DNA of 60,137 nt, the filler included, from Hausera hauseri (Eukaryota): the NCBI GenBank assembly GCA_046269625.1. It is 12 parts of 12 records of this genome, joined end to end, with 100 filler letters (N's around TTAATTAATTAA, not from the genome) between each part and the next. Parts side by side here need not be neighbours in the genome. Positions count along the whole stretch, not along the records: positions 1 to 4,016 come from JBJURY010817419.1; 11 more parts are not named here. The stretch is one strand, 5' to 3'. A program made the position numbers and the translations under genes. Shown piece by piece: positions 1-21,059 of the stretch (position 1 is its first letter; every line of letters starts with the position of its first letter). The notes under the pieces were generated by a model, which was not told the origin of the DNA, did no database searches, and saw nothing but the letters and a program-made list of their open reading frames with translations.

Positions 1-99
1 ATTTATCATTGATAGAGTTGATGGTGTGATGGAGTGCCGCATTTTCGGCGCGTAATTCGTTTAACTGCTGTTCGAGTAAAACATTGTTGGTAGTAACTG

Positions 100-650
100 C
101 TGCAGAAATAACTGGTTGAGTGTGTACGTTCAAAACCTCGTACGTTTTGTCCGCCAGTTCGGCCAATTTATCTAGTGTTGTCGATTCTTCAACGACAGTA
201 AGTAAGGCCCTAATTTATATGGGCAAGGCATTCAGGAAGTAGAGTTGCAAAAGATCGGCGTTATGTTATTTAGTCACGCCAAGTGTTTGAAGTTGCACGA
301 GTGAGGTTCTGAGGAAATCAGATGGTTTCTGCGTCCCCATTGCATTGTCGTTGAAGAAACGGTGAATTATTGAGTCCATAGATGATTCCGTAAGTTTCAA
401 AACGGCATTGTAAAGATGAGTATATGGATCAGGTTTCTGGAAGATATCAAGCAAATCATGAATGGCCGTTTTAACAGTTGTTGGTAAAAGACAAAGCAGG
501 TTATGGGCTTTAGTTATCGGATCAATGATGTTGTTAGATTGCAACCAAAGTTTGTGGAAGCTAAACCACGTTTTGTTAGAATGTTTGTGGTCAATAAAAT
601 ACTCCGTGCATTGAGAAACGTGTTTGGCTGGCGAGGTTGAAGAAGTATAA
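100..650 (-). pseudogene. gag: Ty3/Gypsy-type gag (DUF7041-like) fragment
   Basis: The ORF reads ...DPYTHLYNAVLK...AMGTQKPSDFLR. Reading on past the stop gives ADLLQLYFLNALPI*IRALLTVVEESTTLDKLAELADKTYE, which matches the LGDxKPS / LFLxxLP / LDxLAxxAD signature of metazoan Gypsy gag. In-frame stops are present. Confidence 0.75.
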
Positions 651-1079
651 TTACTGAAAGACGCGTGTCGAATTCTGTTTCCACCGTCGATTATTATCCG
701 ATGTCGCCATTGACGACTCGTACGCATGAATGAAGTTAGCGGCCATTTGGTTCGTGGGAAATTCGTAAAGGTCATTCGTCGGACCGTTTTTGAACAAATG
801 ATCAAGTTTCGCGGCAATTTTGTCGCCCTTTGTAACGCATATGGAAATAATGACTGTCTGGTCACCGGATGCTATACAAATGGGCATGATGGACAAGTCG
901 TCGACGTAGGCATTGAACGACTTCATGTTAAAATCTCCGTCATTGACTTTCGATGACGGGTCGATATTCGGTTCAGGATGAAGATAGACGTTGTTCAGTA
1001 TGAAGGATGGTTTGTAATGCAGTTGCCAAGATAACGATTGGAAACGCTGTAACAGTTGTCTGGCGTTCATCGCTGTGCG

Positions 1080-1480
1080 TTTTTCTATACTGTTCCGCAC
1101 AACATGACTGGGTTTGTTACATTGGTAACATGTGCGATTGGAATTTATGTTGACGGATGGACGTAATGTGGTTGATTCCAGCAACAGGTAGTGTGCGTTA
1201 TCAGGTCGTTGTAAATTATCAGAATTACTATGTAACCGTAAAATGTGAGCGAAATAACGGAGAATATATCGACACTTGTCCAAATTGAGACTACCGCTGA
1301 GATTATGTGACAAAGCAAAAGGATCCTCAATGGTAATGTATGCCGACTGCTAGTCTTCGTCTATTTTGTACAGAGGTTTCATTTGTCGTATGGTGGTGAC
1401 ATGCTTATCAAAAGGGAACTCAACGGTGTAGTAATCAAAGAAATCAAGCCACAGATAACCAAGTGTGAGCAAATTGATCG
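1080..1480 (-). pseudogene. TUT4/TUT7-like (Cid1 family) terminal uridylyltransferase fragment: PAP-associated domain plus degenerate CCHC knuckle
   Basis: Reading through the stop at 1350 gives TLGYLWLDFFDYYTVEFPFDKHVTTIR...*...YITIEDPFALSHNLSGSL, then TCYQCNKPSHVVRNS. This matches the GxLWL.F..FY..EFDF..HVISIR / IEDPFDL.HNLG pattern of TUT4/7. Confidence 0.75.
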
Positions 1481-1499
1481 GATTGGATTTATTGTGAAC

Positions 1500-3590
1500 A
1501 ATATTGGCAACGACTTTGTTACCAAGATCGGACATATGCATTTCATAAGATTCTTTTTTCCAGTTGAATAGTAACGAATTCAAATCTGAAATGTCTGATA
1601 TAGGGAATGATTTTATTCAGTACGATTTGTTCGTTGGCAGATTCCTGCAAATACACACAGAGCGAGAAACCGTTAACTTCACTGGTATGCTGCCAAATGC
1701 ATGGATCCCTGATTTCGATAACCTGATCAATCGTGAGGATCTCTTTAAAAATCAACACAATCCTCTCCGTGACATAGTTTTGGTGGTTGAAGAATAAGAA
1801 CGGAAAGTTTGTGAGGGAAGTGGAATTACTAAACGCAATATCAGCAGAGATGAAAAGCGAAAAAAGCGGGTCGGCAATATACCAACCGTACCATTCCATC
1901 AAGAAGCTGCTGAAGATAATACCAATAGAACTCAATGTGCCTGCTAACACATGCAGATAAACACTCCTCATGTTTTTTTCATCATGATGCGAATGACTAC
2001 GATCATGACCGTAACTGTGACCACGGCCATGATCATGTCCGTGGGAATGGCCTTGGTTTTCTTCAGAACCGTGAGAAGGACCATGGCTATGCCCCAGGGC
2101 CATTATTCCAAACAAGTTCACCAGTAAACCCACGACAGATACCAACTTAAGCCGTTCGATACTAACTTCCGGTGGTTAAATTAGACGATTAACATCATTA
2201 CGGAAAACGGATATTGATATTACAATAAGGAAAAGAGCGTTTATAAAACCTGACAATGCTTCGACTCGATGATACCCAAAAGAATAAATTTTCGACGTTT
2301 TCCACCGGCTGACAATAGCCGCGTAGAGGCCCATCACAATTGCAGAATCGAATAACATGTGAAAACCATCGGAAATCAGTGCTAAACTATTTGTCAGAAA
2401 TCCATAGAACAATTCCACAAACGCAAATGCCAAATTAATACAAAGATACAAAAATATCCGTCTCGAATCGTCATCGAACAATATTTCCATCAACGTCTTA
2501 TGGAGATGACTGACAATCGATGGTCCGGTACAATGGAGAAATTCTTCGCCAACAGAAAATGTATAAAGCGGCAAACCGCCTTTGGAATAACCAACGAAAT
2601 TTCCTTTGTTCGTCTTGGTACGATTGTAACTCGATGCCAATAATTTACAAGCTACATGGAAAATAATCCAAACGAAACAACAACAAAAACCCCTCACCAT
2701 AGGCAATCAAAAACAAACTAACGACAACTCCAAACGACAATTCATGATCGGTATTATCACTATCCAAAATGACAATTTTATGAAGCAAAGTCCTGCTCGT
2801 TGTATACGGATGATTCCAGAAAACTGACAAAAACATGCCGGTAAATCCCATTATCCAATTGCCATAAATGCCAATAAACTGACTACCGTATTTCGTCGCC
2901 GTTATTGAATTCACGTAAAAGTCAACGACGTTATTGCTGATACTGATGTAGAAAATAATGGCTAGAATGTGCCAACTTGATTGAGAAATAGATTCCGGAA
3001 CGTTGAAAAAGTTGTCGTATTGATTGGTGAAATAAAAGGCTAGAACGACGAACAACCACGTAATTGACGAAATGATAGACGAGATTGCCGACAGTCGTTT
3101 ATGGCCACCAACAACGTGACTGATGTTTTTACCAACAATTTCTTTACAACCCGTATCTAGTAACAGTCCCAAAACCAGTAAAATAACACCAGCTTTATGG
3201 TCCGATAATCCAAAAGCGGAAAGAATTTTGTTGAGTACCCGTGGAATCAGAACATTGTTATTCAATCCGGCATTAGGAACATTTTCCCCTGGAGATTTCT
3301 CACCATGATCATGATCGAAAAACAAAATGCGGGTTACAGCACAGATAAAAATAAAAGTTCCACGAGATTTTACCATACTACTATCGTTTAAGAAGAAGAG
3401 ACAACTTAAAATAGACAGGACAATCGTTTCATTGTGTTCGAATATCAAAATAAATCTTAATGGTCCACACAATCCCAATCCAATTAATATTAGCACTTAA
3501 ATAAACCAAACTAACAGTGAATATTTAATAACCTTTATCCACTTGTTCGCTTTTAATTTTTGTCCTGACATAAAAGCCTTTTGGAGAACA
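1500..3590 (-). pseudogene. SLC30A5: Zinc transporter ZnT5 (CDF family), intronless, 5'-truncated, with stops and frameshifts
   Basis: Motifs in ZnT5 order across ORFs 3497-3967 (tail only), 2645-3496, 2176-2706 and 1543-2145: LQKAFMSG...WIKV, GLCGPLRFILIFEH, DHKAGVILL, GYSKGGLPLY, DSRRIFLYLCINLAFAFVELFYG, LISDGFHMLFD, a His-rich loop, VYLHVLAGTL and TIQLEK. Confidence 0.9.
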
Positions 3591-3599
3591 ACGTAATTA

Positions 3600-3990
3600 G
3601 TTGTTACTTTATCCGCAACATCAAGTATAGATTTTAATTTAGTAAATAAACCGTGACACGGAAGGCAACCGCAGGGGATCCCATACACAAAACCCCGACT
3701 TACCACATCGTTCCAAATTTCAGGTGCACAAGTTTCATTTAAAAGCAACAGTGACAATCTGTCTTTCAAAGTACCACAAATTAAATCATTTGTTTCAGCT
3801 GGAACTGTAATGTGCATAAGCTGACACCAATTGTTGTTTCGTATATACTGCGGTATATTTGTTACAGCTGCTGTCAAATAGTTACTCACAAAATCATGTA
3901 GTAAATTTGTAACAGCATTTTGTTGGTGCACTGAATTGTCGTTTGTTGAATTCAAATGCACCAACAATGTCCCACCATAATTTGATTAAT
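3600..3990 (-). pseudogene. Uncharacterised Cys-containing domain ('domain X'), paralogous to 6072-6569 and fused in frame to the ZnT5 fragment
   Basis: LLVH...HQQNAVTNL...NDLICGTL...WNDVVSRGFVYGIPCGCLPCHGLFTKLK aligns by eye with the ORF at 6072-6569. Confidence 0.6.
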
Positions 3991-4199
3991 CTGTCCTCGT
4001 ACAATATGTTAATCATNNNNNNNNNNNNNNNNNNNNNNNNNNNNNNNNNNNNNNNNNNNNTTAATTAATTAANNNNNNNNNNNNNNNNNNNNNNNNNNNN
4101 NNNNNNNNNNNNNNNNAAAAAGCGGCCAATGTCATTAAATTATGATTCGGAATGGGCACAAATAGGAATATTATTATGAAATAAATAACACTACACCGT

Positions 4200-4570
4200 A
4201 TGCCTTGTGCCTCAGGTATTTCCTTGCGAAAAAAAACAAAAGTTTGAACGGTCTTAAGTCGCCAATTAGGGAATTCTTGTATGATACTTATGAGGGCCTG
4301 ATGAGACTTGATTTTCAAATCCTCGTCGACATGAATACTAAAACGTGAAAGTAGATAGACAATCTCAGATTTATTCACGTCTGAAAGGAGTAACCTAGGA
4401 ATAGTAGATATATATGTTTTAAGAAAATCAATTTTTGGCTTTCTTTCGGCGGTTATGACATCGTCCTGTTCTTTGTTAATGTTTTCCTGTTTCATCGAAA
4501 ACATCGTACTAATGTCTTGTTGGTCCAACAGTTTTAACTTGGTATCAAATGCTTTTCAAAAGTCTGTTGG
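4200..4570 (-). pseudogene. FRY: Furry (FRY/MOR2/TAO3 family) internal fragment
   Basis: KAFD...LDQQ...INKEQDDVITAERKPKIDFLKTYISTIPRLL...LLSRFSIHVDEDLK...QEFPNWR matches the Furry segment [27 protein letters not shown]...IHMDEELR...DFPDWR. There is a frameshift at a poly-T run. Confidence 0.85.
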
Positions 4571-4707
4571 TGTTTTACAGTTTATATGGGGTGAATACCG
4601 TCATAGGATCGGCTTTGCCGATATCGGTAACTTGTTCCGTGTCCGATGTTCCTTTAACCATAATTCACTTTAGAAAAGCATTTTTAATAGCTGTGTCAGG
4701 TATAAAT

Positions 4708-6045
4708 TTATAATATTCCGTGAGTTTTGTAATGGGGATAAAAAATATCTTTGGAAACATAATCTATAACCAATTTCCAACGATAACTCAAAATTAAATA
4801 TTTGGAGGATGTTGAAATATCACAGATTTTGTGAGATTTTATAGATCTGTAAACACGATCACTCGTACGTTGGAGGTTAAACAAGGTTCTGGGCTCTAAA
4901 CATCTGACAGTAATTTCAATTTTCCTCGAAAGAACCCAATTGATAAAAACAGTCAAAGCACAAGTGCATTGAATACTAGTATCATCTGACACTAAAAATT
5001 CTTTCAATGATGCACTGGTAGAGTCATCATTAAAATCAGAGAGATAATTTCCTCGAAGATCAACTCTTTTACGAACACCGTGAGTATTAATTGAATGTAG
5101 AACGTCCGTAGATGCAGATATTTTAATAAGTTTATTAAATGAAAGATCAAGATCAGTTAAATGTCGCATACGACTAAGCAAGCAGACGGGTGCATCCGGT
5201 TCTGAACTACTATGACGTGGCTGAAGTCCTATTGGATTGTCTGGAAAAAAATTTTCCGTTTCTGTAGTTGCCAATGTTATGAAATTTTGATAACGATTGT
5301 GAGAAAGATTTAAATATCGCATATTAACCAAATTTAACAAATGAGAAGAACCAGATTGATTTAGTTTATTGTGTGCCAAATTCAAATGAAGTAATGAAGC
5401 AAGTTTTTTCGGCACCTCTACGAAATTGTTTCGCGATAAATCCAGGTCAACGACTGCTTTCATTTTGTCGAATGAAGATTTACAAATTGCACTGATAGAA
5501 CAACCGGATATTTTCAGAATAGATAAACACTGCAAACCAAAAGTCCAATAGTTTTTAATGCTTGTCAAATTAAAATTTTCAAAAATATCCAAAAACTTAA
5601 GACCGGGGAAAGATTGTATATAAAATGGTGCAGTGCCGAAATGACAAATTTCTGAACTACGCTTGTGAACGTTAGTCGCGAATAAATTTCCGCGTAAACT
5701 CAGCCATTTTAATTTTACTAAATACTGCAACGGTAAAGATGGCATCTTTTTAATTTGATTGTATGATAGATCGAAAAATTCTAATTTTTCAAACTGAGGT
5801 ATCAGTCCAAAATCAGATGCGTCGTTTACATCAGCTTTCCTTTTTCGCCGAGAAAAATTAATCGGTCTCTGTTCAACATTATTGTTCACAGTATAAGATA
5901 ATTTGAAGCCGGTGTTTTTATTTGATGATACTCGGTTATCCGACGGGTTTCGAAAAATTTTAAATTTATTAAACCGTAAAGAAAGCCCTTTTAGACTTTT
6001 ATAAACAACGGTTGGAGTTATTTGTTGTGTAGCCGACAGACACAT
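4708..6045 (-). CDS. Leucine-rich-repeat protein, Toll-like-receptor ectodomain type (LRRs plus LRRCT); possibly a pseudogene fragment
   Basis: Multiple LxxLDLSxN repeats, an LRRCT cap (IQCTCALTVFINWV...RCLEP...C) and a juxtamembrane-like YRWK. No intact TM helix or TIR domain is visible. Confidence 0.75.
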   Translation of the reverse strand: MCLSATQQITPTVVYKSLKGLSLRFNKFKIFRNPSDNRVSSNKNTGFKLSYTVNNNVEQRPINFSRRKRKADVNDASDFGLIPQFEKLEFFDLSYNQIKKMPSLPLQYLVKLKWLSLRGNLFATNVHKRSSEICHFGTAPFYIQSFPGLKFLDIFENFNLTSIKNYWTFGLQCLSILKISGCSISAICKSSFDKMKAVVDLDLSRNNFVEVPKKLASLLHLNLAHNKLNQSGSSHLLNLVNMRYLNLSHNRYQNFITLATTETENFFPDNPIGLQPRHSSSEPDAPVCLLSRMRHLTDLDLSFNKLIKISASTDVLHSINTHGVRKRVDLRGNYLSDFNDDSTSASLKEFLVSDDTSIQCTCALTVFINWVLSRKIEITVRCLEPRTLFNLQRTSDRVYRSIKSHKICDISTSSKYLILSYRWKLVIDYVSKDIFYPHYKTHGIL

Positions 6046-6071
6046 TTTCCAAAATATTTTGTGTAGCCGAA

Positions 6072-6569
6072 TTACAAAAAACGTAAATGTAACATGTTGA
6101 TTATTTCGTCGTGTCCCAATTTTAATTTAATAAGTAAACTGTGACATGAAAAACAGGCGCAGGGCATCCCACAAACAAAAGCCGGACTCACGGTATTGTT
6201 CCAAGTTCCAGTTGTGCAGATTTCCGTAAAAATCACCGGTGATAATTCATATTCTAGAGTCCGACAAATCAAATCATTTTCAACGGAATTTGTGCTGCAC
6301 ATTATCTGACACAAATTGTAGTAATTGACTTGAAATTGTATACCAGATATCGTTCCTCTAGAGTAATTAGCAAAGACAGAAAATATCAAATTTATCACCG
6401 CCTTTTGTTGGTGCGTGAAAATAGCATATGTTACATTCCGATGCACCAACAACGTCCCGATATCATTTTGTAGAGTTAATTTTGTGGAATTTGTTACAAC
6501 AGGTAACGTATAATTCTTTCTTTTCCTTTCCGAGATAATTACAAAAATAAAATTCATTTTCAACACCAA
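6072..6569 (-). CDS. Uncharacterised Cys-containing protein ('domain X'); may be the N-terminus of the LRR gene
   Basis: 165-aa ORF with a paralog at 3600-3990. It is separated from the LRR ORF by a short duplicated TGTGTAGCCGA motif (about 6027 and 6060). Confidence 0.5.
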   Translation of the reverse strand: MVLKMNFIFVIISERKRKNYTLPVVTNSTKLTLQNDIGTLLVHRNVTYAIFTHQQKAVINLIFSVFANYSRGTISGIQFQVNYYNLCQIMCSTNSVENDLICRTLEYELSPVIFTEICTTGTWNNTVSPAFVCGMPCACFSCHSLLIKLKLGHDEIINMLHLRFL

Positions 6570-6782
6570 AAATTTATTTTCAAACGTTCAAAAAACTTTT
6601 TCAAATTTTATAAGTAGTAATCATGAATTTAAAACAATTTTTTATTACAAAATCACAAAATATGCCATCTAGCTCTCGCTCATGAAACCCCCCGCGGCCG
6701 TTAAATGTCACAGTTTCCATAATCAGCATAATTACTATTAATTTTCATCCGATGCTAAAAATCCAACGTAACGAAATGAACA

Positions 6783-7219
6783 ATGTCCAAATGTCAACAT
6801 TATTCTCCACTAATGGAACGTGATAGAATTCTTGAAAATTTTCAGGCTATTAGTGAAAATCAGAATTTTGAAGAGTGTAATCAAATTTTAGAATCAGTCA
6901 ATTGGGATTTAAGTAAAGCGGTTGAAAATTTAGACCAACTAAGTGAATTTTCTGTTCCTGCAATGAAATCAAGTACTCTATTGAGTCAATCATCAAATCG
7001 ACCAAGAGATTTAGTTTTCAGTGTCGATATTAAAGGCCAAAATGTGGAAATTATTGTTTCAGAAGACCAAACCGTTAGTGATGTTGCCAAAGTAGCAGCA
7101 TTATATATCAACGATCCAGAATGTTTACTCAAAATAAATTGTCCAAAAACTCCATACGATGACAATACAATTTTAAAAATCATGAAGTTACCAAGTCATA
7201 ATAACGTTGTTGCTACTCC
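6783..7219 (+). pseudogene. FAF1: FAS-associated factor 1 N-terminal part (UBA plus first ubiquitin-like domain), truncated by an LTR
   Basis: MERDRILENFQAI...EECNQILESVNWDLSKAV matches the FAF1 UBA domain, and RDLVFSVDIKGQNVEIIVSEDQTVSDV matches UBL1. The last codons of the ORF derive from the LTR that starts at 7220. Confidence 0.8.
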
Positions 7220-7390
7220 TGTTGAATGCACGAAATAAAACTAAAATAAGTAGTAGAACTACAATACGCTCCGGTGGCAAGGTGTGACGTAAAGATAAAA
7301 GAAATAGTAAACTAACGTAGAACGAAACAGTGTGGGCTAACTATGTGGTCTTCGTATGTTCAAGTCGTTGTATTCCATCAGTATTTAACA
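7220..7390 (-). repeat. LTR (171 bp) of the adjacent Gypsy element
   Basis: TG...CA ends with inverted termini TGTTGAAT / ATTTAACA. It lies 3' of the minus-strand integrase. Confidence 0.7.
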
Positions 7391-8909
7391 CTCTACTGTA
7401 GGTACTGAAAGTGACCTATTTGTATTTTTTAGTATCGTTGAATCTGGTTGACAATTTGATGGAGATTCAACGATGTCGGACGTCGTCGTTGAGGGTGGTA
7501 TATCATTCAGCGACGGGGGATGGGTTGGAGGGAAAAGTGGTGAGATTAGCGTGAGGAGTTTGAGGAGTAGGTTCTATTAGCCGGCTGGGTGTACGGTTTG
7601 GAGGAATAGAAATTGGGAAAGGCGGTTGTGTTAGAGAAGGTGTAGAAGGTTTAGTTTGAGATGCATAATCGACGAAATGGCAGGCTTTACATTGTTCATG
7701 TACACCGCTAGTTCTTTGCCGTCTTTAAAAATAATTGCATTATGGGAGTGCAATTGAACTAGTTTGTAAGGACCTAAATACCGTGGTTGGAAACCGCACG
7801 GTGTCTGGTTTCTGAACCAGACGAATTTTTCCGAGTGTAGATACTCCAGTAGGTATGTTTTATTTTTATTCAAGATCCTACAGAAAGAATCTCTGCTGAC
7901 GGCAACAAAATGGTCCTGTGCTAATAGAATAGATTCGTCTGTCGGTGTATCTTCTAAGGCCGTTAACTCGAACAATGAGCGTAAAGATGTTCTGAAAAGG
8001 CTTCTGTAGGTTAACAGCCTGTAGAAGTAGAAGGTGTATTACACCAACCTAGAAGAACAAGCGGAAGGAGAGTAGTCGAACTGCAATTGGATTCAGCGAG
8101 GATTCTCAATGACGTTTTTAGTGTCCTTTGGTATCTCTCTAGCAGACCATTCGATTGAGGGTGGTTCTTTGATGTGTGGATATGGATAATTCCTAATTGG
8201 TTAATAAGAGATTTAAACAAATTTGACTCAAACTTTGTACCTTGATCTGTAATAATGAATCTAGGGGATCCAAATCTACTGATCCACGTGCGTATGAAAA
8301 CGTCGGCGATCGTGTCCGTATTGGTGCTCCGTAGTGGAACGGCTTCTGGCCAACGTAATAAACGATCCATCATGGTCAAAATGAACTGATGACCGTTATC
8401 AGGAGGAAAAGGACTAACGAGATCAACATGAACGGACTCAAAACGTGATGTGCAATGGAAATGGCAAAGTATTGGCTTCACATGTTTGGTGATTTTAAAT
8501 TTCTGGCAAGGCGCGCACTCCTTAACCCACGCTTGCACATCAGAACGCATAGCAGACCACATTACTTGTCGTTGAAGTAAGCGGAGAGTTGCTTTGGCAC
8601 CAGGATGATGTAACGAATGCATGTTTTAAAATACTTGTTTGTGTAAGGATGTAGCGAGAATTATCCTGGATTGTCCTGGTTTGGAGGTATCTAAGGCCTC
8701 GCCGTCGATTATCTGGTGGGATTTGAACAAACTGAGAATATCTTGCGATGGCTGATTTTCCTGGAGCTTTGTCTGAGTGAAGATTGGCGAAAAATTGATC
8801 GAGCCGACTGATCTAGATAGGAAATGGGCAACTAGATTGTCAACACCCTCGATATGTTTGATGTCAAAGTTGAATGTGGACAAATATGAAATTTGCCGTT
8901 CTTGTCGAG
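7391..8909 (-). mobile_element. pol: Ty3/Gypsy LTR retrotransposon pol 3' part (RNase H end, HHCC zinc finger, rve integrase, GPY/F), degenerate
   Basis: FDIKHIEGVDNLVAHFLSR; HSLHHPG...CAPC; VHVDLV; ITDQGTKFES; HPQSNGLLER; PRYLGPY. Stops and frameshifts are present. Confidence 0.92.
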
Positions 8910-9148
8910 NNNNNNNNNNNNNNNNNNNNNNNNNNNNNNNNNNNNNNNNNNNNTTAATTAATTAANNNNNNNNNNNNNNNNNNNNNNNNNNNNNNNNNNN
9001 NNNNNNNNNAAGAACAGAGAAAGGTTAATAAGTGGGTCATTGAATGTACCTCAATGACCACCTTAAGTTGCGGGAATGGTGATGATGCTGATAAATGGTA
9101 CTGAATGACTATTCTTTTTTTTTGTAATACAATGTTGGGTAAGAGAAG

Positions 9149-9350
9149 GAGCCGCAGTGGTGTAGTGGTTAGTGCGCTCGTGTGCCGATCGCATTGTCGT
9201 GGGGTCAAACCCCCAAATAAAAAAATTTTTATTTTTTTTTTTTTTTACCGAAACCTCCAGGGTCCCACCAAGCTTCAAAAATGGGTACCGGTGATATTCT
9301 CTGGGAAAGTAAAAGCGGCAACATAACCCAATCATGTGTCGGTGTCAATG
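9149..9350 (+). mobile_element. tRNA-derived SINE
   Basis: A box TGGTGTAGTGG and B box GGGTCAAACCC, followed by a conserved-core-like AATGGGTACCGG...GTAAAAGCGGC. Confidence 0.6.
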
Positions 9351-10312
9351 AAAAAAATGGGGACACTAACTCCACATTTCCCCATTAGGCTGCATTTAGG
9401 TGTGAAATGGACCTTGCTACTTTTTCACCACTGGGAAAGAGTGAACTAGGTTTACAATAACGAAAACCATTTACAGGTTAGAATTTAAAAAACAAACAAA
9501 CAAAAAACCGTATACTAAGGTTCATGTATTATGCAACGGTAAAACGACTTACCTAATTTGAGCCCTCTGTCAGTCTGGTCCGGCGTGTGTTCCAAGCCAT
9601 TGCTATTTTCTTCATGTCTCAGACGCTTAACTGAACTTGCCATTGCCGGAGACATTTTACTTGCTTGTAATATCGTGTCCGTTTTAGAAGTTCGATAATT
9701 TTTTTTGTTTTATTTTATCTACACATTATCACTCAACACATTTTGGAAGTGTGTCTAATATAATAAACACAACAGTGAATAAACTGGAGCGAAATGTATG
9801 CAAAAGTGATGTTGCACAAAAAATGAATTATTAAAAAATGTCAGTCTGACAAACACTCTAATTGGTTCAATATCCTTATTAGTATCCAAAAAGATGTCGA
9901 ATTAAGTGCACGACTTCAATAGCACCATCTGATCCATATAATGTCGGATATGTGTCTTTTCGTAGAAATGTTACCCGTCACACTGAGTCTTTCACAGTGC
10001 TGGGCTTAGTTATGAGTTGAATGGGCTCTAAAACTTCATATCCAAGGGGCACCACATCTTTCTGACGAGGTTATTTTAATTTACTGTTAACAGAGAGATC
10101 ATCTCAGAGCCAACACATTTTCTGTGTCTTGAGTCACAAAAACACACTTTCACGAGGCTGGAACAGTTCGTTTGCTCGTACTGTGTTGTATTTGTAGATG
10201 AATCAATATATTATAAATGTGAAGTCTTTTGAAGGATTTTAAAGACTGAAAAGAAGCAAATTGTTCAATTCATCATGGCGGCCATGCTTGTGTTTTGGTC
10301 ACTCTACCATAG

Positions 10313-10595
10313 TTATTGTTTCATGAAACTGGGCTGTTGAAATGCCACAGAAAGTGGTACAGTCATCATATGCAGATTCTTTCCTGAGCGTGTGGAGCTA
10401 CAAAGGGAATTGGAAAAATCTGCAGTGAAGGGCTTGGTCTGTTCTTGCTTTGTGCTGGTGCTAACGGGATTTAGCAGCCATGAAACTGCCTCTTGTTTTA
10501 TTCTGTCTCCATCAATTGAAAAAAGTGGAGCAGAGGGACGATTAAGAGTTGGTAATCTTGAGCTCCATTGTTCAACCTCATTCAGGTGAGTAAAC
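10313..10595 (-). CDS. Putative terminal exon of an unidentified intron-containing gene
   Basis: A polypyrimidine/CTGCAG acceptor (TTTTCCTCCCCTGCAG) is followed by about 94 open codons to TAA. A second similar acceptor lies near 12250. The product is not recognised. Confidence 0.3.
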
Positions 10596-11379
10596 CTGCA
10601 GGGGAGGAAAAGTCAAGTCAAATTTATTTATAAAGCACTTTTAAAAACAGCAGTTGTTACCAAAGTGCTTAACAATATAAAAAACAATGGCAGTAATTTA
10701 AAGAAAAAAATGATTTAAAGCATCAAAGGAAAACACAAAACAACAAATCAAATCACACTGGGTTAAAAGTCAGTGAAAACAGATGTTTTTAAAAGTGAAT
10801 TAAAAACAGGAAGGGAAGTGGCCTGTCCAATGTTGGGGGCAGACTGTTCCAACATTTTTCCAGAAGCTATCCTTCCACCAGGCGGACCAGTTTCAATGCA
10901 GACATGTTCCTGTTTTTGATTTTCTACATATGTCTGTTTTGCTACTTTGACATCTTTGTTTTAACTTGTTAAAAAATAATCTGTATTTCTCTCTTATGAT
11001 TGTCTATTGTTGATTGTCCAAGGAAAATCTACTGTTGCTGTTGTCATCATTCTTAGTTTGTAGCCAGGTCTCTCTTGTAAATGAGTCCTCGAGGCTCAAT
11101 GAGATTAACCTGCCTAAATAAAGGTTGAATGAATGAATGAAAAAACTTTGTCAATAGTAATAGTTTTAACTGTAAACAACAACATAGACTTATTCTGTTA
11201 TTCTTACTGGTTTAAACAAAGGTGATTCAGCCAGGCTAAAAAATAAAAATGCTCAGAATTGCTGCAATAAACAGAAAAAAGACTGAGTAAGTCAAGTTCA
11301 AGAACTCAGGCCAGGGTCCCAGTTACACCCAACAATAGCAAAAATATAAATTGTAAAAAGAAACAGTAATACAGATATA

Positions 11380-11926
11380 AATCTGTCATCTTCTGACACT
11401 CAGCATATTCTATAGAGTGTAAACTCTTCAGATGGTGAAACAAGTTAGTTGTGTTCCCACCGCTACTTGGAACGACTCCGACATATTTTGCAGCATACAG
11501 AAACCTGCTGTTTATCAGATCTTTGAAAGCCGAACCACTTCCACACCGCTGAATTAGTCTTTCCTTTCTTATCAATTGTGTCGTCTGCGTTCTCCTCCTT
11601 TGTGAACACTTCTTCAGTCACATTCTGACGGGCGCTCATTTTGATTCGAAAACTTTCCGCACGTCGTAGATTAGCCTAGCTTGCTACCACTGACTGCCGG
11701 ACTCGCGCTCTGCATAATATCTACGTCACCACGCACTTACGTAGTTGTGTCGCGGCTTTTTATGTTCGGGTTGAAACGTCAACCCGAACATAAAATGAAT
11801 GCGTCAGTGAAAAGCTGTAATCATAGCGTAATGTCTTATCGAAAATATGCTTAAAACTCATATTATCGTTATCGAAAAAAAGTATATCGGCGAGATATAT
11901 CGTTATCGAATTTTTGTCCAGCTCTA
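11380..11926 (-). mobile_element. hAT transposon 5' end (TIR plus BED zinc-finger remnant), teleost-like
   Basis: Terminus TAGAGCTGGACAAAAATTCGATAACGATATATCTCG on the minus strand, and the BED-finger remnant SSGGNTTNLFHHLKSLHSIEYAEC. Confidence 0.7.
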
Positions 11927-13074
11927 CGCTAACACTAAGATTTTTTTTCCCAAATGTGACTGTTAACTGTGGTCCTAAAAAAACTTGTTTGATTTCTAAA
12001 AGACGAGCAAATAAACATATTTTTAGCCACAGACCAGATATGCATGACTAAAATAATTAAATTTGGAAAAGCAAGGTCATGTCAACATAGGATTCTGTCT
12101 GCTACATCCACCTCCCTCTCTGTTCTTCTGTATTGGTCAGGCAGATATGCGGGGACCAGTTTGCCACTGTCACACAGTGAAATGGGAGATAGCACTGGAA
12201 GCCACCAGAAATGACCACCAATGAAATGAATCAGATCCATCACTGTCTGCAGGGGAAAGAAGCCCAGCAACACAACCTAATGAATCGAAGACGGGGAGGT
12301 GGGGGGTGAGAGCAGTGGGAATGGGTTTGACGGTGGGGCTTGGGCGACCATCATTTACAACCATATAAAAAAGGAAAGAAAGGTTTTAAGAATCATTTTG
12401 ACCGTTGTAGAACGCATAATCAAAGTTAATGTAAGTTAAAGTAAAAGTTGAAGTTTTATTAATTTCTCTTTACTTAAGTGTAAGTTTAAAAGTGCTTTAC
12501 TGTAAATGTACTTCAATTTGATTAATAAATTCAATTTTGTGAACAGAATATGTCATACACAAGCACTATCACACAAAGGTTTGATCCTTTAAATGGCCTC
12601 TTTTTTCTAGAGCTATTTTATACACATTGAAAGAGGAATTGCAACAAACTTTGACCTTTAGCAAAACGTTTAGCTTATACATAATTTACATTTAGTAGCT
12701 TTAATACAACTGGCATGAGAATTGAGATCAATTTACATATATAATAGAAATCATAACTGCTGCTCACCTGACCTTCCAGACCAAATCTATAACAGTGTAA
12801 TCCATTTGTTTTCTTTTTGTAGGCCATTTTATATATTTACTGACTGTATAAGACTATATTTAACTGTGTTGGTCCTGCTAACTAATGAAAACAAATTTAT
12901 TTTCTCTGCTTTCCTAGTAAAGCACTGATCATTTATTCACTAGGGTCTCACTTATTATATTACAGCCAATCAAGNNNNNNNNNNNNNNNNNNNNNNNNNN
13001 NNNNNNNNNNNNNNNNNNTTAATTAATTAANNNNNNNNNNNNNNNNNNNNNNNNNNNNNNNNNNNNNNNNNNNN

Positions 13075-13975
13075 GCGAACAGTTTCACCCGATGTTTTGT
13101 ACGTGTCAGAATCCAGTTCGATAGAAGCCAGTAGTTGTTTACGTTCTCCACTAACGAGTACGGATTTGTCTAAGTCAATTAAAATGTTAATTTTATGAAA
13201 TACTCCATAGAGTCGTGATTTGTATTTGGCAACAATAGATTGTCCAACAATGGTCTGATAGAATTCGCGTTTTGAAAAACCCAGATTCCGAGCCAACAAT
13301 TCATCAAAGGCAAAATATGTAACATTGTCATGCAGTATAACGAAATATAACCATCTGCGTTTATTTCACATTTCTTTACAGCTAATGTAGCCGTTTTCTT
13401 GACGTATTCACACAATTTCAGTTCCGTTTCCATTAATAAATCGTGTTGTATAATATATGATCGGAAGACTGATTCTGACTTAGTCCATTTTACTATAATG
13501 CCGGATTCCGGATCGGATGGAAGGCCCAATTTTTCACCAATTATATCATGTCCACCTAGCCGTAGACCTTTCGAGTGTACATTGACTGATTGAAAATCCC
13601 ATGCCTGAGCGTCAGCTATAGAATTAAACTGCATTTTAATGGGATTTCGATGCATTGGTTTCATACAGTAGTTTAAAAATAAGCATAAAGCGAGAAATGT
13701 CGCAAATATTTGCAAAGAGTATATCGGTTATTGCATCGGATTGTCCGCAAACGACTTAAAATAGGGTACGTTTCTTGTCGGGTAAAGTAAATACCACTGT
13801 TCTGACGTATTGTCATTTGTGAAAATGTGAATGCGAATTCCGTCAAAGCCACTTCCCAGGCTACGAAACGTAAATCAACCGGTTAGTCCAAGTGCATGAT
13901 AAACTGTTTAGCGTTATTGTCATTGTAGTCATGTTGTGATAATGATCTGTTACTATCAAGTACCAAGTAAATGCT
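13075..13975 (-). pseudogene. Maverick minor capsid (penton-like) protein 1, frameshifted
   Basis: Near-identical in protein to 45057-46101 (METELKLCEYVKKTA..., INILIDLDKSVLVSGERKQLLASI). Confidence 0.75.
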
Positions 13976-14640
13976 GCTCATTGAATCTGTGATGCAAAAA
14001 TCCAACTCGGTGCAATATATCCGTGCCACTTGACGAGATGTTGTTTATTCGAACCTTTGTCACGTGAACGTAGAATTTCCTGAATACGATATACATCGAG
14101 TTTCTCGGGCAGTACCTGCAGTTCCTGTTTGTAGAATTTACTGCGTATTTACTCATTGTTTTCATCCTCTAAAACGTACATGACAGGTGTATGTTTTGTG
14201 TTGATTGTCGAAATGCGGAAAAACTCATTGCTGCAGTTCTGATTGAAATTCTTAATGAATTGCGTCGTACTTATTTTAGAAATACGTACATAAGCATCGA
14301 TTATATATTTTGGTTGCCTGTTGCCGTTGTGTTCGGTTTTGATAAAGCCACATGTTCAAATCATTGATTACCTCAACCGGGCACATTCCGTTGATTCCAC
14401 TGTGTGTAGAATGATTGTATGCATGAATAATATCCGGTTGTACATCTACCCAGCGTTTTTTTCCTTGCTTCGTAAAGAAATCGGTTCGTTCAGGCTGTAT
14501 GCTAACTGTTTCTCTAGCCAACGTTGGGTTTGTTGCCAAGTCTGTTTGATAGTCTTTGCCAGTTTGTCAACGCCAGTATACCCGATGGGATGAAGTGTAT
14601 CAAACCATACTTCATCCGTCACTGTCGTCGATAATGACGC
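13975..14640 (-). pseudogene. Maverick rve integrase/chromodomain with the catalytic core deleted
   Basis: WFDTLHPIGYTGVDKL...WLEKQLAYSLNEP is joined directly to FFTKQGKKRWVD..DIIHAYNHSTHSGI. The 3' chromodomain-like part matches 44700-45060. Confidence 0.8.
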
Positions 14641-14762
14641 TTTTGTTTGCATTGCAGCATTTAAGACAAAATGTTAATAAAAGATTCGGTAAACTAGGCA
14701 AAATGATGAAAACCATGCACCCATATAGCAAAATCATCATATACTTACCGTCACTGATTATA

Positions 14763-15060
14763 CTAAACTGTTCCACCAATGAGTTCACCCAGTAATGACG
14801 CGACAACCAGTAGAATTGTACCAAGGAATCCGCCATATTGCTGGTACATGACCTCTGGATTAAGTCGTTTACTACGAGCGTTGGCAAGACCAATGCGTCG
14901 TTTTCGATACTTTAGTAAATTCCGCTTTCCAATACTAATGTCAACGTGACCCACAACAATATTGTACAAAATTTCCATCAAATCTTAGGAATGATCGCAG
15001 CATGTTTCGCTTATGTCTCGTAGGTGCCTTGAACAAAGCAATAAAGTACGGCTGACTACG
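14763..15060 (-). CDS. Conserved small Polinton protein with a C-terminal GGFL motif (putative virion core/cement protein)
   Basis: EILYNIVVGHVDIS...LLKYRKRRIGLA...QQYGGFLGTILLVVASLLGELIG, a pattern typical of the ORF downstream of the Maverick ATPase. Confidence 0.55.
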
Positions 15061-15305
15061 TTTGAATCGCATTTTTAAACTATTGATGTTGAGATGTAGT
15101 TTTTTATAACCGTTGCCGCTGTGAGGCTAATTTGCATCCAGTTGATGCTGTTGTTCAAATCACAGAACAAATTAATGGCTTGACTGTAGAGCTTCGTTTT
15201 TATACACGTTTCATGCCGGGATCCTGCTTGGTAGGTTTACATTTAACAATGGTTTTTCGGAAATTCTTTATTTTGTCACATTCATGTAAATTTTCAAATT
15301 TGTTT

Positions 15306-15870
15306 TTAGATACAGACTTTCTGATTGAAAATATCAGTTCGTCCGCGCATGTCATGATATTCCTCTATCAAGTAGGCTTGGTTGTGAGGAAATACTTGTC
15401 GTGCAACATAATCAATGATGGTCTGATTACAGGGATTTTTGAACAACACCAAATAGTGTACATTTAGATTTCTTGTTCGATGCTGTCCGACCTGAAGGAA
15501 TACGTTTTGCGTAATGAAAATAATCGACATACCACCGTATCGTGCAATTTTCGTGAACAGGTTGTTGAAATCTGATTGTTTCGAGGCTTCCTGAAATAAA
15601 TCGTCAATGATAATAACGTCACCGTTGCATAATCTCAGACCAGTTCTCATCAAACCCATCAAATACCGTTATTAATTTTAATTTACAAAATTCCGGATGT
15701 GTCAAACCGGACTTACCATCATCACCAATATCCTGATGCCAGTAAATGTGATTGTACCGCGGTGAATGGAACATGTCACGGTAGTTCTGCAAAAGTTTAC
15801 ACACAAAGTGTGTTTTGCTACTTCCACTGGGGCCTACAGTGTGGAAAATTGTACCATTTTGCAGCTTCAT
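15306..15870 (-). pseudogene. A32/FtsK-like DNA packaging ATPase, frameshifted
   Basis: Walker A (VGPSGSSKT), Walker B (VIIIDDL), FTKIARYGGMSIIFITQN and RNLNVHYLVLFKNP. Confidence 0.9.
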
Positions 15871-15941
15871 CTAATAATAGTAATAATAATAATAATACAA
15901 CCTTTTCTCACAATATAATTTGTTTATAATCGTGTTACACG

Positions 15942-15952
15942 CTTATAAATAG
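15942..15952 (+). promoter_or_regulatory. Candidate TATA box in the 96-bp divergent intergenic region between the ATPase and TBP-like genes
   Basis: CTTATAAATAG about 20 nt upstream of the ATG at 15967. Confidence 0.35.
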
Positions 15953-15966
15953 CTAAAGTTTCCATA

Positions 15967-16428
15967 ATGTTAGTTAATATTAACTATCGCGGATATGCTA
16001 CCAAGTGTGACATTAACACACTAGCTTTTAATCAATGGAAGCCGAGGCAGTATATCCTCAAGTGTCCACTGGATTTTACACGCATCATATTTTAATTAGG
16101 AAAGTGTCGTATTATGTGTTGTCGCAAACCAATTACAGCTGACAGTAACAGTAAACTACTACCATTCGGAATTGTCATTGACAAAATCCAATCAATAACG
16201 GTAACGACTCAGTTAGACTACCAATCAATCAATCTGTACAAATTAGCTATGGCCACTGAATGTACCTATAAACCCAAACTGTTTCATGCATTGAGACTGA
16301 CATTGTTTCACCCACTTTGTGTCAATGTGTTTAGCAGTGGAAAAATTGTTGCACTCGGTATTCGGACGGTGGACTATGAACCGATTATTAATCAAATTAA
16401 AAACCGCATAAATGTTTTAGTAAATTAA
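15967..16428 (+). pseudogene. TATA-binding-protein-like protein (two-repeat TBP fold, about 153 aa) with one in-frame stop at 16093
   Basis: Repeat 1: MLVNINYRG...RIIF*LGKCRIM. Repeat 2: IQSITVTTQLDYQSINLYKLA...YKPKLFHALRLTLFHPLCVNVFSSGKIVALG. Compare TBP IQNMV...I.LE.L...YEPELFPGL.Y....P....LIF.SGKVVLTG. Confidence 0.75.
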
Positions 16429-16602
16429 AATAATATACTCTGCATAACAAAATATATATACCATTCCTATGGTCATTCAGATATTACTGCCATGAAAGAC
16501 GACTATAAAACAATTCTACTCAATGGTGACAGTGATGAAAGTTCAGATTGGTCGTGATTGTTTGGCTACAAGAAGGTCAATTCTAATGTCAAATTGATAT
16601 AA

Positions 16603-17148
16603 ATGAGAACAGAACTTATCCAACAATTAGAAAAACTGAGTGATTGTGTGCAGGACGATTATGATGACGATTGTCTGGAAACGAAAAAGGAACTTGCTCA
16701 AAAGTCATTAGCTGCAAAAGCGACGTTAAAAAGGCAAAATGCAATGATTGAAATACGTAAACGAAAATTAAAACCGTCGAGCCAAACACAGACATTTTTA
16801 CCGAATCGAATTTTTCGCGAGTATGAAATGCATTTTCTGCAAACGCCCGTACTGATTTCATTGAAAGACCCGACGTCTCTATGTGCATCCAAGTACAGCT
16901 ATCGTGTAAAACGGCTTTCGGGTAAAAATTTAAATAAACTTTCTGATGCTCTGCATCAATTAAACGTGGATTTAAAGTTAAGCGAAACGACCGTGCAACA
17001 GAAAACTGTCGTTTTACAAACTCAGAAAACGAAATTGTTCGATTTTACCTGTCGCAAAATGTTTAATGTACCCATTGATGATTTAAAGTGTCGACTGAAT
17101 ATTGACTTACAAAGATACAAAGAAAAAGCCGATTTGGAGTGTAGCTGA
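16603..17148 (+). CDS. Hypothetical 181-aa protein (likely Maverick accessory gene)
   Basis: Intact intronless ORF with an NLS-like RKRKLK, lying between the TBP-like gene and dUTPase. AATAAA follows the stop. Confidence 0.55.
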   Translation: MRTELIQQLEKLSDCVQDDYDDDCLETKKELAQKSLAAKATLKRQNAMIEIRKRKLKPSSQTQTFLPNRIFREYEMHFLQTPVLISLKDPTSLCASKYSYRVKRLSGKNLNKLSDALHQLNVDLKLSETTVQQKTVVLQTQKTKLFDFTCRKMFNVPIDDLKCRLNIDLQRYKEKADLECS

Positions 17149-17283
17149 AGTACATTTTAGTTATCAATAAATATTGTTGTTGTTGCCGTTGTTTTGTTTT
17201 ACCGTTTTTCTTTCATTAACCCAATTAACGAGAATAAATATACGTGTAATTTTAATATTGGTATAGGAATAAAAATAATAATA

Positions 17284-17379
17284 ATGAATGATGTAAAGAT
17301 TATCTTAGCAGACAAAAATGCCTTTGCACGGAGACCTGTTACAGCAAACAGTGCAGGCTACGATGTGTTTTCCAATGTC
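17284..17379 (+). CDS. dut: dUTPase N-terminus (truncated by the contig end)
   Basis: MNDVKIILADKNAFARRPVTANSAGYDVFS matches dUTPase motif 1 (P.R.T..SAGYDL). Confidence 0.75.
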
Positions 17380-17738
17380 NNNNNNNNNNNNNNNNNNNNN
17401 NNNNNNNNNNNNNNNNNNNNNNNTTAATTAATTAANNNNNNNNNNNNNNNNNNNNNNNNNNNNNNNNNNNNNNNNNNNNTCATAGTGTACATTTAAATGT
17501 TGACAAATTTTGAGACATTTTTTTACAAGTGACACTATGCAAAATTTAAACAAAGTGGGGGTGGGAATAGTGAAACCCCGACTACGCCAATTGATTTTTC
17601 GGGTGTGGGAATAGTGAAAACCCGACGACGCCAAAATTTCATATAAAATATTGATTATTGAATACTAGTTTCCAAAATATCCATATATAAAATATTGATT
17701 ATTGATTATCGCTAGGGGGAGGGGGTGGTGTCATGCGT

Positions 17739-19860: not shown

Positions 19861-20399
19861 CATTGTAATAACCAGATAAAGATATAAAGTAATAAGCTTT
19901 ATTTTTAAACCAATATTAAATCCATTTTCAATTTTTTATAAACATGTAATATACATTTGATATATACATGTTACAGATTTCTTACAAGTTTTTGTACCAT
20001 CGGAAATTTGGCAAGATGCTGCTGTTCACATTTGCAATCAAGAATCACTTGCTTTGTGTCTTTGACATTTGTGCAGTGCCCACTGTGAACATCTTGAAAT
20101 TTTCTATCCATACTGACACGGAATGGAACATTATTCCGCACTTCTTCAATTTGCCCTTTTTTCTATGCAGAAGAATCTCAGGAGTTGTCAAAATTATCAA
20201 CTTTTTCCGATTGCTAATTTTTAGACTTATTATGTTTTCTTGAACTGATGAATATCTGCCAAATGTTTATTCATAAGAAAAGAAATATTAACGTCGTGAA
20301 TGATAATGGGACAAATTATTTTAACTACATACTGGAAATCGCATTTTAAAAGAATATTGTTCGGAAAAAATTGAATCTACAAAATTCTTCTGCAGTTTG

Positions 20400-20895: not shown

Positions 20896-21059
20896 AATAT
20901 AGCTTAGCAATGAGCTCATATAAGCACCAACACAGGCAATGCGGACTTTACATACACAGTGCTGCTGGAGTTTTATGATCCAGCAGCCCATGTACATCTG
21001 CGTCATTTTCTAACCCTCACGATTACCAACACGATTTAAAAATAGTGTCATTCTTACTA

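Follow-up and report, generated by a model that had tools for sequence, protein, structure and literature searches.

A decaying Ty3/Gypsy mosaic of host gene fragments in Hausera hauseri, very probably built by serial template switching onto host mRNAs

The first 4,016 positions (record JBJURY010817419.1) of the window, i.e., of the whole 60,137-nucleotide stretch of Hausera hauseri DNA that was analysed, filler included, are occupied by pieces that all lie on the minus strand. Read from position 4016 to position 1, these are a module of unassigned origin (module X), a fragment of the zinc transporter gene ZnT5/SLC30A5, a fragment of the RNA uridylyltransferase gene TUT4/7, a stretch without family assignment, and part of a Gypsy gag gene. 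The features are as follows:

3566..4016, minus strand: module X, an open frame without assigned origin, cut by the contig end and present in multiple copies in other mosaics
1483..3565, minus strand: retro-fragment (~2.08 kb) of ZnT5 (SLC30A5), lacking both ends and today a pseudogene
2652..2697, minus strand: 46-nt intron-like insert bounded by GT..AG when read on the sense strand, at the frame break between ORFs 2645-3496 and 2176-2706
1483..1490, minus strand: ZnT5/TUT junction of 8 nt (sense AAATCCAA), found in both donor sequences
1074..1490 (3' edge at ~1074), minus strand: TUT4/7 fragment with the PAP-associated domain (Pfam PAP_assoc) and a degenerate CCHC knuckle
665..1073 (5' edge at ~1073), minus strand: stretch without family assignment, which in every canonical copy is colinear with the TUT piece
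661..665, no strand: deletion junction, at which 888 bp of the canonical element are missing
1..661, minus strand: Ty3/Gypsy gag fragment (Pfam DUF7041), cut by the contig end

Pfam matches in the window were to Cation_efflux (ORFs 2176-2706 and 1543-2145), PAP_assoc (ORF 1350-1583), and DUF7041 (ORF 266-865). The sequence-only reading of this region as five co-oriented pieces joined without spacers was borne out.

The long N-terminal extension of the transporter piece matches SLC30A5 entries, while matches to ZnT7 are confined to the CDF core; in the sister copy L028, SLC30A5 entries align over 57-90% of the length and ZnT7 over 18-22% only. The piece thus combines the CDF core with the long N-terminal multi-helix extension typical of SLC30A5, and the window copy is no intact gene. 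A parent was found in the same genome on contig L041 (C353998), which carries three GT-AG introns of 46, 45, and 45 nt and, when spliced in silico, encodes an intact 255-aa C-terminus ending at the native stop; its exons are 93.6% identical to the window. All three introns are exactly missing from the window (at ~1965, 1741, and 1612), as well as from the copies L004 and L003. Because the parent bears introns, and so is not natively intronless, and the window is free of all three of them, the retro-origin of the ZnT5 piece is demonstrated directly. The assembly search returned no parent for the N-terminal part. The earlier claim that some 2 kb of ZnT5 had no introns held for these three parental introns but not for positions 2652-2697, where a 46-nt GT..AG insert is kept and is the cause of the frame break between the two ORFs named above. 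The size and ends of this insert agree with those of the three parental introns; it is absent from the sister copies L003 and L028 in the alignment, and an intronless contig of sequencing run X1 omits precisely 2652-2697. Counting against the explanation favoured below, the insert could instead have come in by gene conversion from the parent gene, or by an assembly path that ran through it.

The ZnT5 piece is cut at the 5' end at approximately residue 75 and, judged by the parental stop, has lost its last ~15 codons, the 3'UTR, and any poly(A). Such arbitrary truncation of a spliced mRNA (three introns gone, one other intron-like insert kept) with no poly(A) is what LTR-mediated retroposition leaves behind. 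An L1-type processed pseudogene does not fit, since poly(A) is found at no junction and the ZnT5 3' end is missing. The same observations bear on a LINE-type origin, in which a non-LTR reverse transcriptase engaged in target-primed reverse transcription would have changed templates from Gypsy RNA to mRNAs, in the manner of the U6-L1 and Magnaporthe tripartite chimeras. Template jumps of this kind are known to yield co-oriented, spacer-free, multi-part retro-chimeras (PMC2104539), a likeness that extends to the present mosaic. However, LINE chimeras terminate in poly(A) or the 3' part of a LINE and have target-site duplications (PMC2104539), whereas the constant 3' partner here is Gypsy gag-pol; no LINE sequence or poly(A) was found in the minus-strand sequence of the window, and Pfam scans of related loci gave no LINE-type match. 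This origin is therefore very unlikely.

In a side-by-side view of the window, the parent L041 (which continues to its native stop), and canonical TUT copies, the 8 nt at the ZnT5/TUT junction are present in both donors. The joint runs through these shared nucleotides, and the ZnT5 tail indeed continues in frame into the PAP-associated domain, as had been read from the sequence. Measured at further junctions, as the sequence-only reading had proposed, microhomology is ~3 nt (CAC) at 661/665 and, as read from the alignment, 11 nt with one mismatch at the deletion junction of L003. For comparison, the median microsimilarity at switch points in LTR-mediated retroposition is 6 bp (Tan et al. 2016, Genome Res, PMC5131818). 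Contigs L004 and L009 carry the same ZnT5/TUT junction as the window, the three being 92-96% identical; the mosaic was amplified after it had formed.

The assembly is built from short reads and consists of 909,086 contigs, so long-range linkage within repeats is unreliable. The contig might accordingly be a chimeric path through high-copy repeats such as gag and TUT; the same pairs of contigs give discordant identities (66% for gag versus 87% for TUT), and a segment of the parent gene threaded into the contig could account for the lone retained intron. In run X1, the only public run that holds this stretch, none of the short contigs shown bridges 661/665 or position 1490. Nevertheless, a de Bruijn mis-join requires a shared k-mer, and the junctions share 3-8 nt only. 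The ZnT5/TUT junction recurs in three diverged contigs, another contig (C309026) spans the X/ZnT5 junction at 84% identity, and the copies differ by 4-10% and hence represent distinct loci. An assembly artefact is accordingly a highly improbable account of the mosaic.

The PAP_assoc match of the TUT piece has an E value of 8.7e-8. Its intact relative at L027:3980-5095 matches human TUT4 and TUT7 (E values of 4e-64 and 4e-60 in a search of PDB sequences) over the C-terminal catalytic module and the CCHC knuckle. This canonical copy comprises the NTase palm, the PAP-associated domain, and the knuckle that define TUT4/7 (ZCCHC11/ZCCHC6). The window retains only the 3' part of the module, i.e., the PAP-associated domain and the knuckle (1130-1089), which is degenerate in that its last Cys is replaced by Ser. 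Canonical copies (eight rows from six contigs) continue upstream into the NTase domain. At least 60 contigs have TUT copies; these agree in their 3' end, and their 5' truncations fall into steps (aa 1, 72-93, 197, 206-215, 275, and 295); the likely parent is C205329, known from its coordinates only. The stretch at 665-1073 may be either a piece in its own right or the tail end of the transcript that supplied TUT. It has no Pfam match on either strand, and its sole match among 1.84 billion representative proteins, a bacterial Ig-repeat protein, was judged spurious. The TUT, no-family, and gag parts belong to one multi-copy repeat that is older than the mosaic.

Module X was found on at least 13 contigs at 79-92% identity. 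Its partners elsewhere include TOG and PHD_NSD domains (L056), Peptidase_M16 (L058 and L062), and an unnamed stretch leading into TUT (L063); in L065, it lies ~1 kb downstream of the integrase C-terminus. Neither strand has a Pfam match, and a search of the ESM Atlas with the L063 ORF that contains the module gave none either. The contig depth of module X in run X1 is 270-445, versus ~10-25 for ZnT5. Canonical copies of the module diverge from the window at ~3566. The proposed in-frame transition from module X into a 5'-truncated ZnT5 is present, but the junction lies at ~3566 and not at 3497, positions 3497-3499 being a nonsense codon inside ZnT5.

The gag fragment (DUF7041 core at 356-574) contains two nonsense codons. 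Its copies are very numerous, with 89-93% identity and contig depths of 1,800-21,000 in run X1; an intact 423-aa gag is encoded at L017:1166-2437. Related contigs display the gene order of Ty3/Gypsy elements (Metaviridae), with the gag DUF7041 domain followed by RVP in L029 and RVT_1, RT_RNaseH and RT_RNaseH_2, and then Integrase_H2C2 and rve in L030; the window holds only part of gag. The 888 bp missing at 661/665 comprise a DPAGT1 fragment, the leader, and approximately the first 92 gag codons, and the interval that corresponds to 661/665 spans 886-889 bp in contigs L021-L024. L009 and L003 lack the same region through a different deletion. DUF7041 clusters are most common in arthropods, and the DPAGT1 identities, ~50-59%, are flat across phyla.

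The flanking LTRs and primer binding site that the sequence-only reading had led us to look for could not be defined in the related contigs, which are short, and neither could a polypurine tract. The host pieces may lie inside an LTR, in the leader, or between two element copies. The 12.6-kb contig C25563, compared with itself, shows a second element copy and no direct-repeat pair, and the regions downstream of integrase and upstream of gag share no repeat or similarity. The only candidate signals are a TGG-led motif, located ~85 nt ahead of the gag start, and a purine run ~300 nt after integrase; the scans for polypurine tracts and terminal motifs were unconvincing. In the window, the host pieces are flanked on the 3' side by co-oriented gag and on the 5' side by module X at the contig edge. 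The order in L022, C25563, and L065 is integrase, 3' region, host pieces, and gag, the reverse of the published layout of LTR-mediated retroposition, which counts against the explanation that we favour.

Across the surveyed contigs, 16 host gene families are found on the gag strand and none antisense (16:0), in line with the co-orientation seen in the window, and the process is genome-wide. This ratio, like the 8-nt microhomology at the ZnT5/TUT junction, goes beyond chance. Among 15 antisense ORFs scanned, the sole match was to Endonuclease_7. A long UBA1 frame on C287280 is known from its coordinates only. The DPAGT1 fragment lies upstream of gag in 19 contigs of this Ty3/Gypsy family; its 5' ends fall at L025 positions 5612, 5698, and 5797, with a different upstream partner at each. 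Contig depth in run X1 declines stepwise, gag far exceeding TUT and TUT exceeding ZnT5. The mosaic is therefore not a single event but the tip of a nested series (DPAGT1 in 19 contigs, TUT in at least 60, ZnT5 in few).

These regularities are difficult to reconcile with a pile-up at the DNA level, in which cDNA fragments of mRNAs and retroelements would have been captured successively at chromosomal breaks by microhomology-mediated end joining and then spread by segmental duplication. Breaks in mouse zygotes do capture spliced-mRNA cDNA and retrotransposon DNA (PMC4516963), microhomology of 1-11 nt is equally compatible with end joining, and no LTRs were found. However, break capture predicts random orientation rather than 16:0, and the mosaics are always next to one element family. 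Moreover, the DPAGT1 and TUT pieces each keep a constant 3' end while their 5' ends are truncated in steps, and this is the polarity that copying of RNA from 3' to 5' by a polymerase should produce. A DNA-level pile-up is thus very unlikely.

Some related contigs contain chimeric ORFs of 538-882 aa that run through several pieces into gag. The earlier suggestion of chimeric ORFs was correct in that they exist, but they evolve almost neutrally (dN/dS of 0.4-1.0 among copies). These frames, the somewhat lowered dN/dS, and the in-frame X-ZnT5 and ZnT5-TUT joints could be taken as signs of a domesticated gene, selected for a host-gag fusion protein. Yet two in-frame joints are expected by chance in 1 of 9 cases, the near-neutral dN/dS makes no case for such selection, and the window has two nonsense codons each in gag and ZnT5 (the latter at 3497-3499 and 2176-2178), a +1 frameshift at 1553, three 2-nt deletions, and a lost zinc-site Asp. 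A functional fusion is highly improbable, the least likely of the explanations considered.

The copy in the window, dead and decaying, very probably belongs to a chimeric Ty3/Gypsy retroelement made by serial reverse transcriptase template switching onto host mRNAs. Intron loss, the 8-nt joint, and genome-wide co-orientation all support the original proposal of serial switching at the RNA level tied to a Gypsy element. The reverse transcriptase of the element would copy RNA from 3' to 5' and repeatedly leave its template, guided by a few bases of microhomology, for co-packaged host mRNAs or sibling chimeric element RNAs. Every jump would truncate the current piece at its 5' end and add a new spliced, co-oriented piece upstream. 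The retro-origin of ZnT5, the microhomology, the shared junctions, the nesting, and the co-orientation are demonstrated; the Gypsy identity of the reverse transcriptase, its action within a virus-like particle, and the way in which the chimeras were propagated are inferences. The order of events is suggested by copy number and nesting. A DPAGT1 fragment may have been fixed upstream of gag in the ancestor of the family, and TUT4/7 cDNA with its no-family tail would then have been joined and amplified to dozens of copies. In one lineage, the enzyme would have left TUT at position 1490 for a ZnT5 mRNA that was only partly spliced, copied ~2.1 kb, and moved on at 3566 to module X, which was probably carried by another chimeric element RNA. 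The resulting mosaic could have multiplied to a few copies, of which the window copy would have lost 888 bp (DPAGT1, leader, and gag start) and gained nonsense and frameshift mutations.

In retroviral transduction, as in gag-onc fusions, spliced host sequence enters a retroelement genome by template switching of reverse transcriptase, and the reading frame of gag is often kept. The oncogenes acquired in this way are usually located within gag or downstream of it and are under selection for function, whereas the fragments described here are many, lie upstream of gag, and decay almost neutrally. The closest parallel is LTR-mediated retroposition (PMC5131818), in which partial copies of spliced host mRNAs are likewise fused, co-oriented and without poly(A), to LTR-retrotransposon sequence; multi-gene chimeras are on record, including the four-gene "Super" retrocopy, as is secondary amplification of a chimera (Tan et al. 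2016, PMC5131818). Published retrocopies take the place of part of the internal ORFs between two LTRs, with few examples per genome (PMC5131818). In H. hauseri, by contrast, host pieces lie upstream of gag and downstream of integrase, nested over many rounds, with one fragment (DPAGT1) in 19 contigs and chimeras at tens of copies or more. The present case thus matches LTR-mediated retroposition but is unusually serial and amplified. Maize Bs1 (Elrouby and Bureau 2001, 2010), as recounted in PMC5131818, is also an LTR retroelement with cellular gene fragments, drawn from three unlinked genes into a hybrid open frame. By that account, Bs1 is a single low-copy plant element with defined LTRs, whereas here an animal Gypsy family has taken up fragments of at least 16 host gene families and its LTRs are undefined.

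A bolder reading, tentative and on balance doubtful, is that this Gypsy lineage might be a present or recent self-propagating exon-shuffling machine. The mosaics would reside in the LTR (U3) or leader, be carried in the genomic RNA, and be re-spliced and re-shuffled in each replication round, and the co-oriented arrays could serve as templates for antisense small RNAs against host genes. Such a machine would explain the nested 5' truncations, the presence of DPAGT1 in 19 contigs, the exact loss of the 46-nt intron in L003, and the frames of up to 882 aa into gag.

In animal genomes, LTR-mediated retroposition is otherwise documented by a handful of young retrocopies each; here, it is serial and cumulative within one Gypsy family, which has drawn on at least 16 unrelated host genes, joined them head to tail (often in frame), and amplified the products. 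The genome is thus a natural record of reverse transcriptase template switching: its nested copies show where the junctions lie, how long the microhomologies are, in what order the events took place, and what the splicing state was. In practice, gene prediction and orthology assignment in Hausera hauseri will be misled by such mosaics, which may also supply much chimeric coding sequence and much RNA that overlaps host genes.

Positions 1-4016 of the window are the entire 4,016-bp contig C817419, from an assembly of 868 Mb in 909,086 contigs, and the minus strand of this contig holds every long open frame. Pfam searches with the window ORFs returned the domains below and no family for 3497-3967 (module X) or 651-1313.

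2176-2706 and 1543-2145, minus strand: Cation_efflux (Pfam)
1350-1583, minus strand: PAP_assoc (Pfam)
266-865, minus strand: DUF7041 (Pfam)

A DNA search of the genome showed that the contig is built of repeat units, with very many copies of positions 1-661 (89-93% identity), many of 665-1490 (80-92%), and a few of the ZnT5 part (89-92%). In the one public run that contains the stretch, contig depth drops in parallel, from ~1,800-21,000 for gag to 150-500 for 665-1490 and 5-25 for ZnT5, and climbs again to 270-445 at 3750-4016; these are summed contig depths, and copy number can be read from them only roughly.

The ZnT5 part of the window is a retrocopy whose parent is present in the genome. 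The parent locus (L041, on contig C353998) aligns with window positions 2213-1483 at 93.6% exon identity and carries three extra GT..AG-ended segments of 46, 45, and 45 nt that neither the window nor the sister copies L004 and L003 contain; without these introns, it encodes an unbroken 255-aa ZnT5 C-terminus with a natural stop. Another sister copy, L028, matches SLC30A5 entries over the N-terminal extension, and matches to ZnT7 cover the CDF core only. The window copy has decayed: it contains two nonsense codons (2176-2178 and 3497-3499), a +1 frameshift at position 1553, three deletions of 2 nt, and an Asp-to-Gly replacement in the HxxxD zinc-site motif.

At the junction between ZnT5 and TUT, 8 nt (sense AAATCCAA, 1490-1483) are common to the ZnT5 parent, to canonical copies of TUT (related copies elsewhere in the genome), and to the window, which tracks ZnT5 upstream of these bases and TUT downstream. 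The parent extends 15 codons beyond the junction to its stop, so the captured ZnT5 lacks the 3' end and poly(A). Because the same junction is found in L004 and L009 (92-96% identity), it is real and arose before these copies diverged. On the other side of ZnT5, four canonical copies of module X part from the window just after 3566, beyond which, as a lead only, the window reads as ZnT5 on comparison with the human N-terminal region; the boundary previously placed at 3497 is actually the nonsense codon within ZnT5. Contig C309026 also runs across this junction, with 84% identity. At 661/665, the window lacks 886-889 bp that are found between these points in L021-L024, with junction microhomology of ~3 nt. 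The ZnT5-bearing L009 and L003 retain 350 of the 888 bp and lack the rest together with the counterpart of window 665-997; these deletions arose independently of that in the window, from a common ancestral mosaic. As read from the alignment, L003 has a further deletion that joins ZnT5 position 1640 to TUT position 1184 over 11 similar bases with one mismatch.

Canonical copies of 665-1490 run on upstream into the nucleotidyltransferase domain (L007, L026, and L027). One of these, L027:3980-5095, matches human TUT4 and TUT7 (E-values of 4e-64 and 4e-60, respectively) over the C-terminal catalytic module and a CCHC knuckle. In the window, everything before the PAP-associated domain is missing from the TUT piece, and the knuckle at 1130-1089 no longer has its last cysteine. 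Neither Pfam nor a protein database search detected relatives of the stretch at 1073-665 (~136 codons); since it is colinear with TUT in every canonical copy, it may be the TUT transcript's own tail. The TUT piece is found on at least 60 contigs with a constant 3' end and with 5' ends clustered at residues 1, 72-93, 197, 206-215, 275, and 295. Its likely parent, with tiny introns, is C205329:371-894, where, judging from match coordinates only, three TUT-like matches (aa 184-212, 210-270, and 269-324) lie 42-44 nt apart, one exon boundary being no more than a few codons away from the ZnT5-TUT junction on its TUT side. Several diverged copies also show an antisense open frame of 76-170 aa over the unassigned stretch.

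Window 726-956, plus strand: antisense frame, no family match
L027:3437-3916, plus strand: antisense frame, no family match
L024:3097-3606, plus strand: antisense frame, no family match
L026:2289-2714, plus strand: antisense frame, no family match

The repeat at 1-661 is a Ty3/Gypsy gag. Related loci encode an intact 423-aa gag with DUF7041 (L017:1166-2437), a retroviral protease after gag (L029), and RT, RNase H, Integrase_H2C2, and rve (L030); in the ESM Atlas, the closest clusters are DUF7041 families, which occur most often in arthropods. Upstream of window position 661, every gag-bearing contig has 610-890 bp in common with the others before the sequences diverge. The shared stretch includes a DPAGT1 fragment (Pfam Glycos_transf_4; 50-59% identity to animal DPAGT1, E ~1e-37), present in 19 contigs at 70-85% identity. 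Its 5' end corresponds to position 5612, 5698, or 5797 of L025, each time with a different upstream partner, and some copies reach further upstream.

Upstream partners identified with Pfam, all on the gag strand
UBA1
OST-alpha fused to protein kinase, in one 710-aa frame
APC/Arm
Laminin_G
Helicase_C
ABC transporter membrane domain
TOG
NSD-type PHD finger
peptidase M16
multi-KH vigilin-like protein
CLEC16A fused to MEIOB, in one 219-aa frame

With ZnT5, TUT, and DPAGT1, the sense-oriented host families total 16, and none of the 15 antisense ORFs scanned matched a host gene. The process is genome-wide, as the sequence-only reading proposed, and it is also nested. The only antisense Pfam match near a mosaic, Endonuclease_7 at L026:5410-5760 (plus strand, E 5e-7), probably belongs to an unrelated mobile element or a gene beyond the mosaic. 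The CLEC16A-MEIOB frame (L033:3119-3775, plus strand) is another in-frame fusion of two genes, a C-terminal piece of CLEC16A with an N-terminal OB piece of MEIOB, and a vigilin-like multi-KH fragment of ~2.1 kb lies upstream of it. Module X recurs in other mosaics; the 613-aa frame L063:1-1839 (minus strand) starts with it and ends with a TUT piece, and the ~460 aa in between have a high content of F, Y, N, I, and C, with no Pfam or Atlas match. A stop-free UBA1-like frame of 1004 aa, located by match coordinates only (C287280:3006-3641), is 67% identical to the UBA1 fragment of C25563 and represents either a parent gene with few introns or a retrogene that is well preserved.

In L022, C25563, and L065, the order is integrase, a 3' region of ~0.4-0.5 kb, host pieces, DPAGT1, leader, and gag, which suggests that the host pieces are located where an LTR is expected. 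The same order would be expected if the pieces lay in U3 and the short-read assembly had collapsed, and dimer-length products could be another source. Self-comparison of C25563, comparison of regions downstream of integrase with those upstream of gag, and motif scans defined no LTRs, primer binding site, or polypurine tract. One subfamily has a ~2.2-kb ORF-free spacer without DPAGT1 between integrase and gag (L044:272-2530, plus strand, on C218521), which may represent the native LTR together with the leader. At ~1680 in L009, immediately 5' of the deletion junction, lies a conserved TGG-led motif (TGGTGTGTTTCGT...) with CA before it; L021, L024, and other copies have equivalents ~85 nt before the start of gag, a position that makes the motif a candidate primer binding site. 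The same contig pairs show 87% identity in TUT and 66% in gag, a discordance that indicates either recombination between subfamilies or chimeric contigs.

The predicted chimeric ORFs do exist, as frames of 538-882 aa that cross several pieces in related contigs, but their function is weakly supported because pairwise comparisons between copies of the TUT, unassigned, and DPAGT1 segments give dN/dS values of 0.4-1.0 (median near 0.65), which amounts to relaxed, near-neutral evolution. Two frames, of 882 aa (L022:2830-5475, plus strand) and 860 aa (L032:2749-5328, plus strand), start in host pieces, cross the DPAGT1 fragment and the leader, and enter gag; they are surprisingly long, given 10-20% divergence from their relatives.

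The host pieces are co-oriented with gag and constantly linked to one Gypsy family, they have lost introns and mRNA 3' ends, their 5' truncations are stepped and their 3' end stays constant, and their junctions show microhomology. Together, these features are consistent with template switching by the reverse transcriptase of the element, which would be guided by microsimilarity; the serial switching between mRNAs suggested earlier fits this evidence. A microsimilarity-guided template-switching model, along with multi-gene chimeras and secondary amplification, has been described by Tan et al. 2016 (PMC5131818); the present mosaics differ from those in layout and scale.

The ZnT5 copy was also described earlier as intron-free; it lacks the three parent introns but keeps a 46-nt GT..AG intron-like insert at 2652-2697 (minus strand), which puts the two large ZnT5 ORFs out of frame with each other. 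L003 and L028 precisely lack this insert, as does one contig of the public run. It could have been threaded into the contig by the assembler as a short stretch of the parent gene, or brought in by gene conversion from the parent. A further reading is that the captured mRNA was incompletely spliced and that the insert was spliced out later, once the mosaic had been transcribed again in the L003 lineage. If the L003 lineage did lose the insert through splicing, the mosaic has propagated via RNA.
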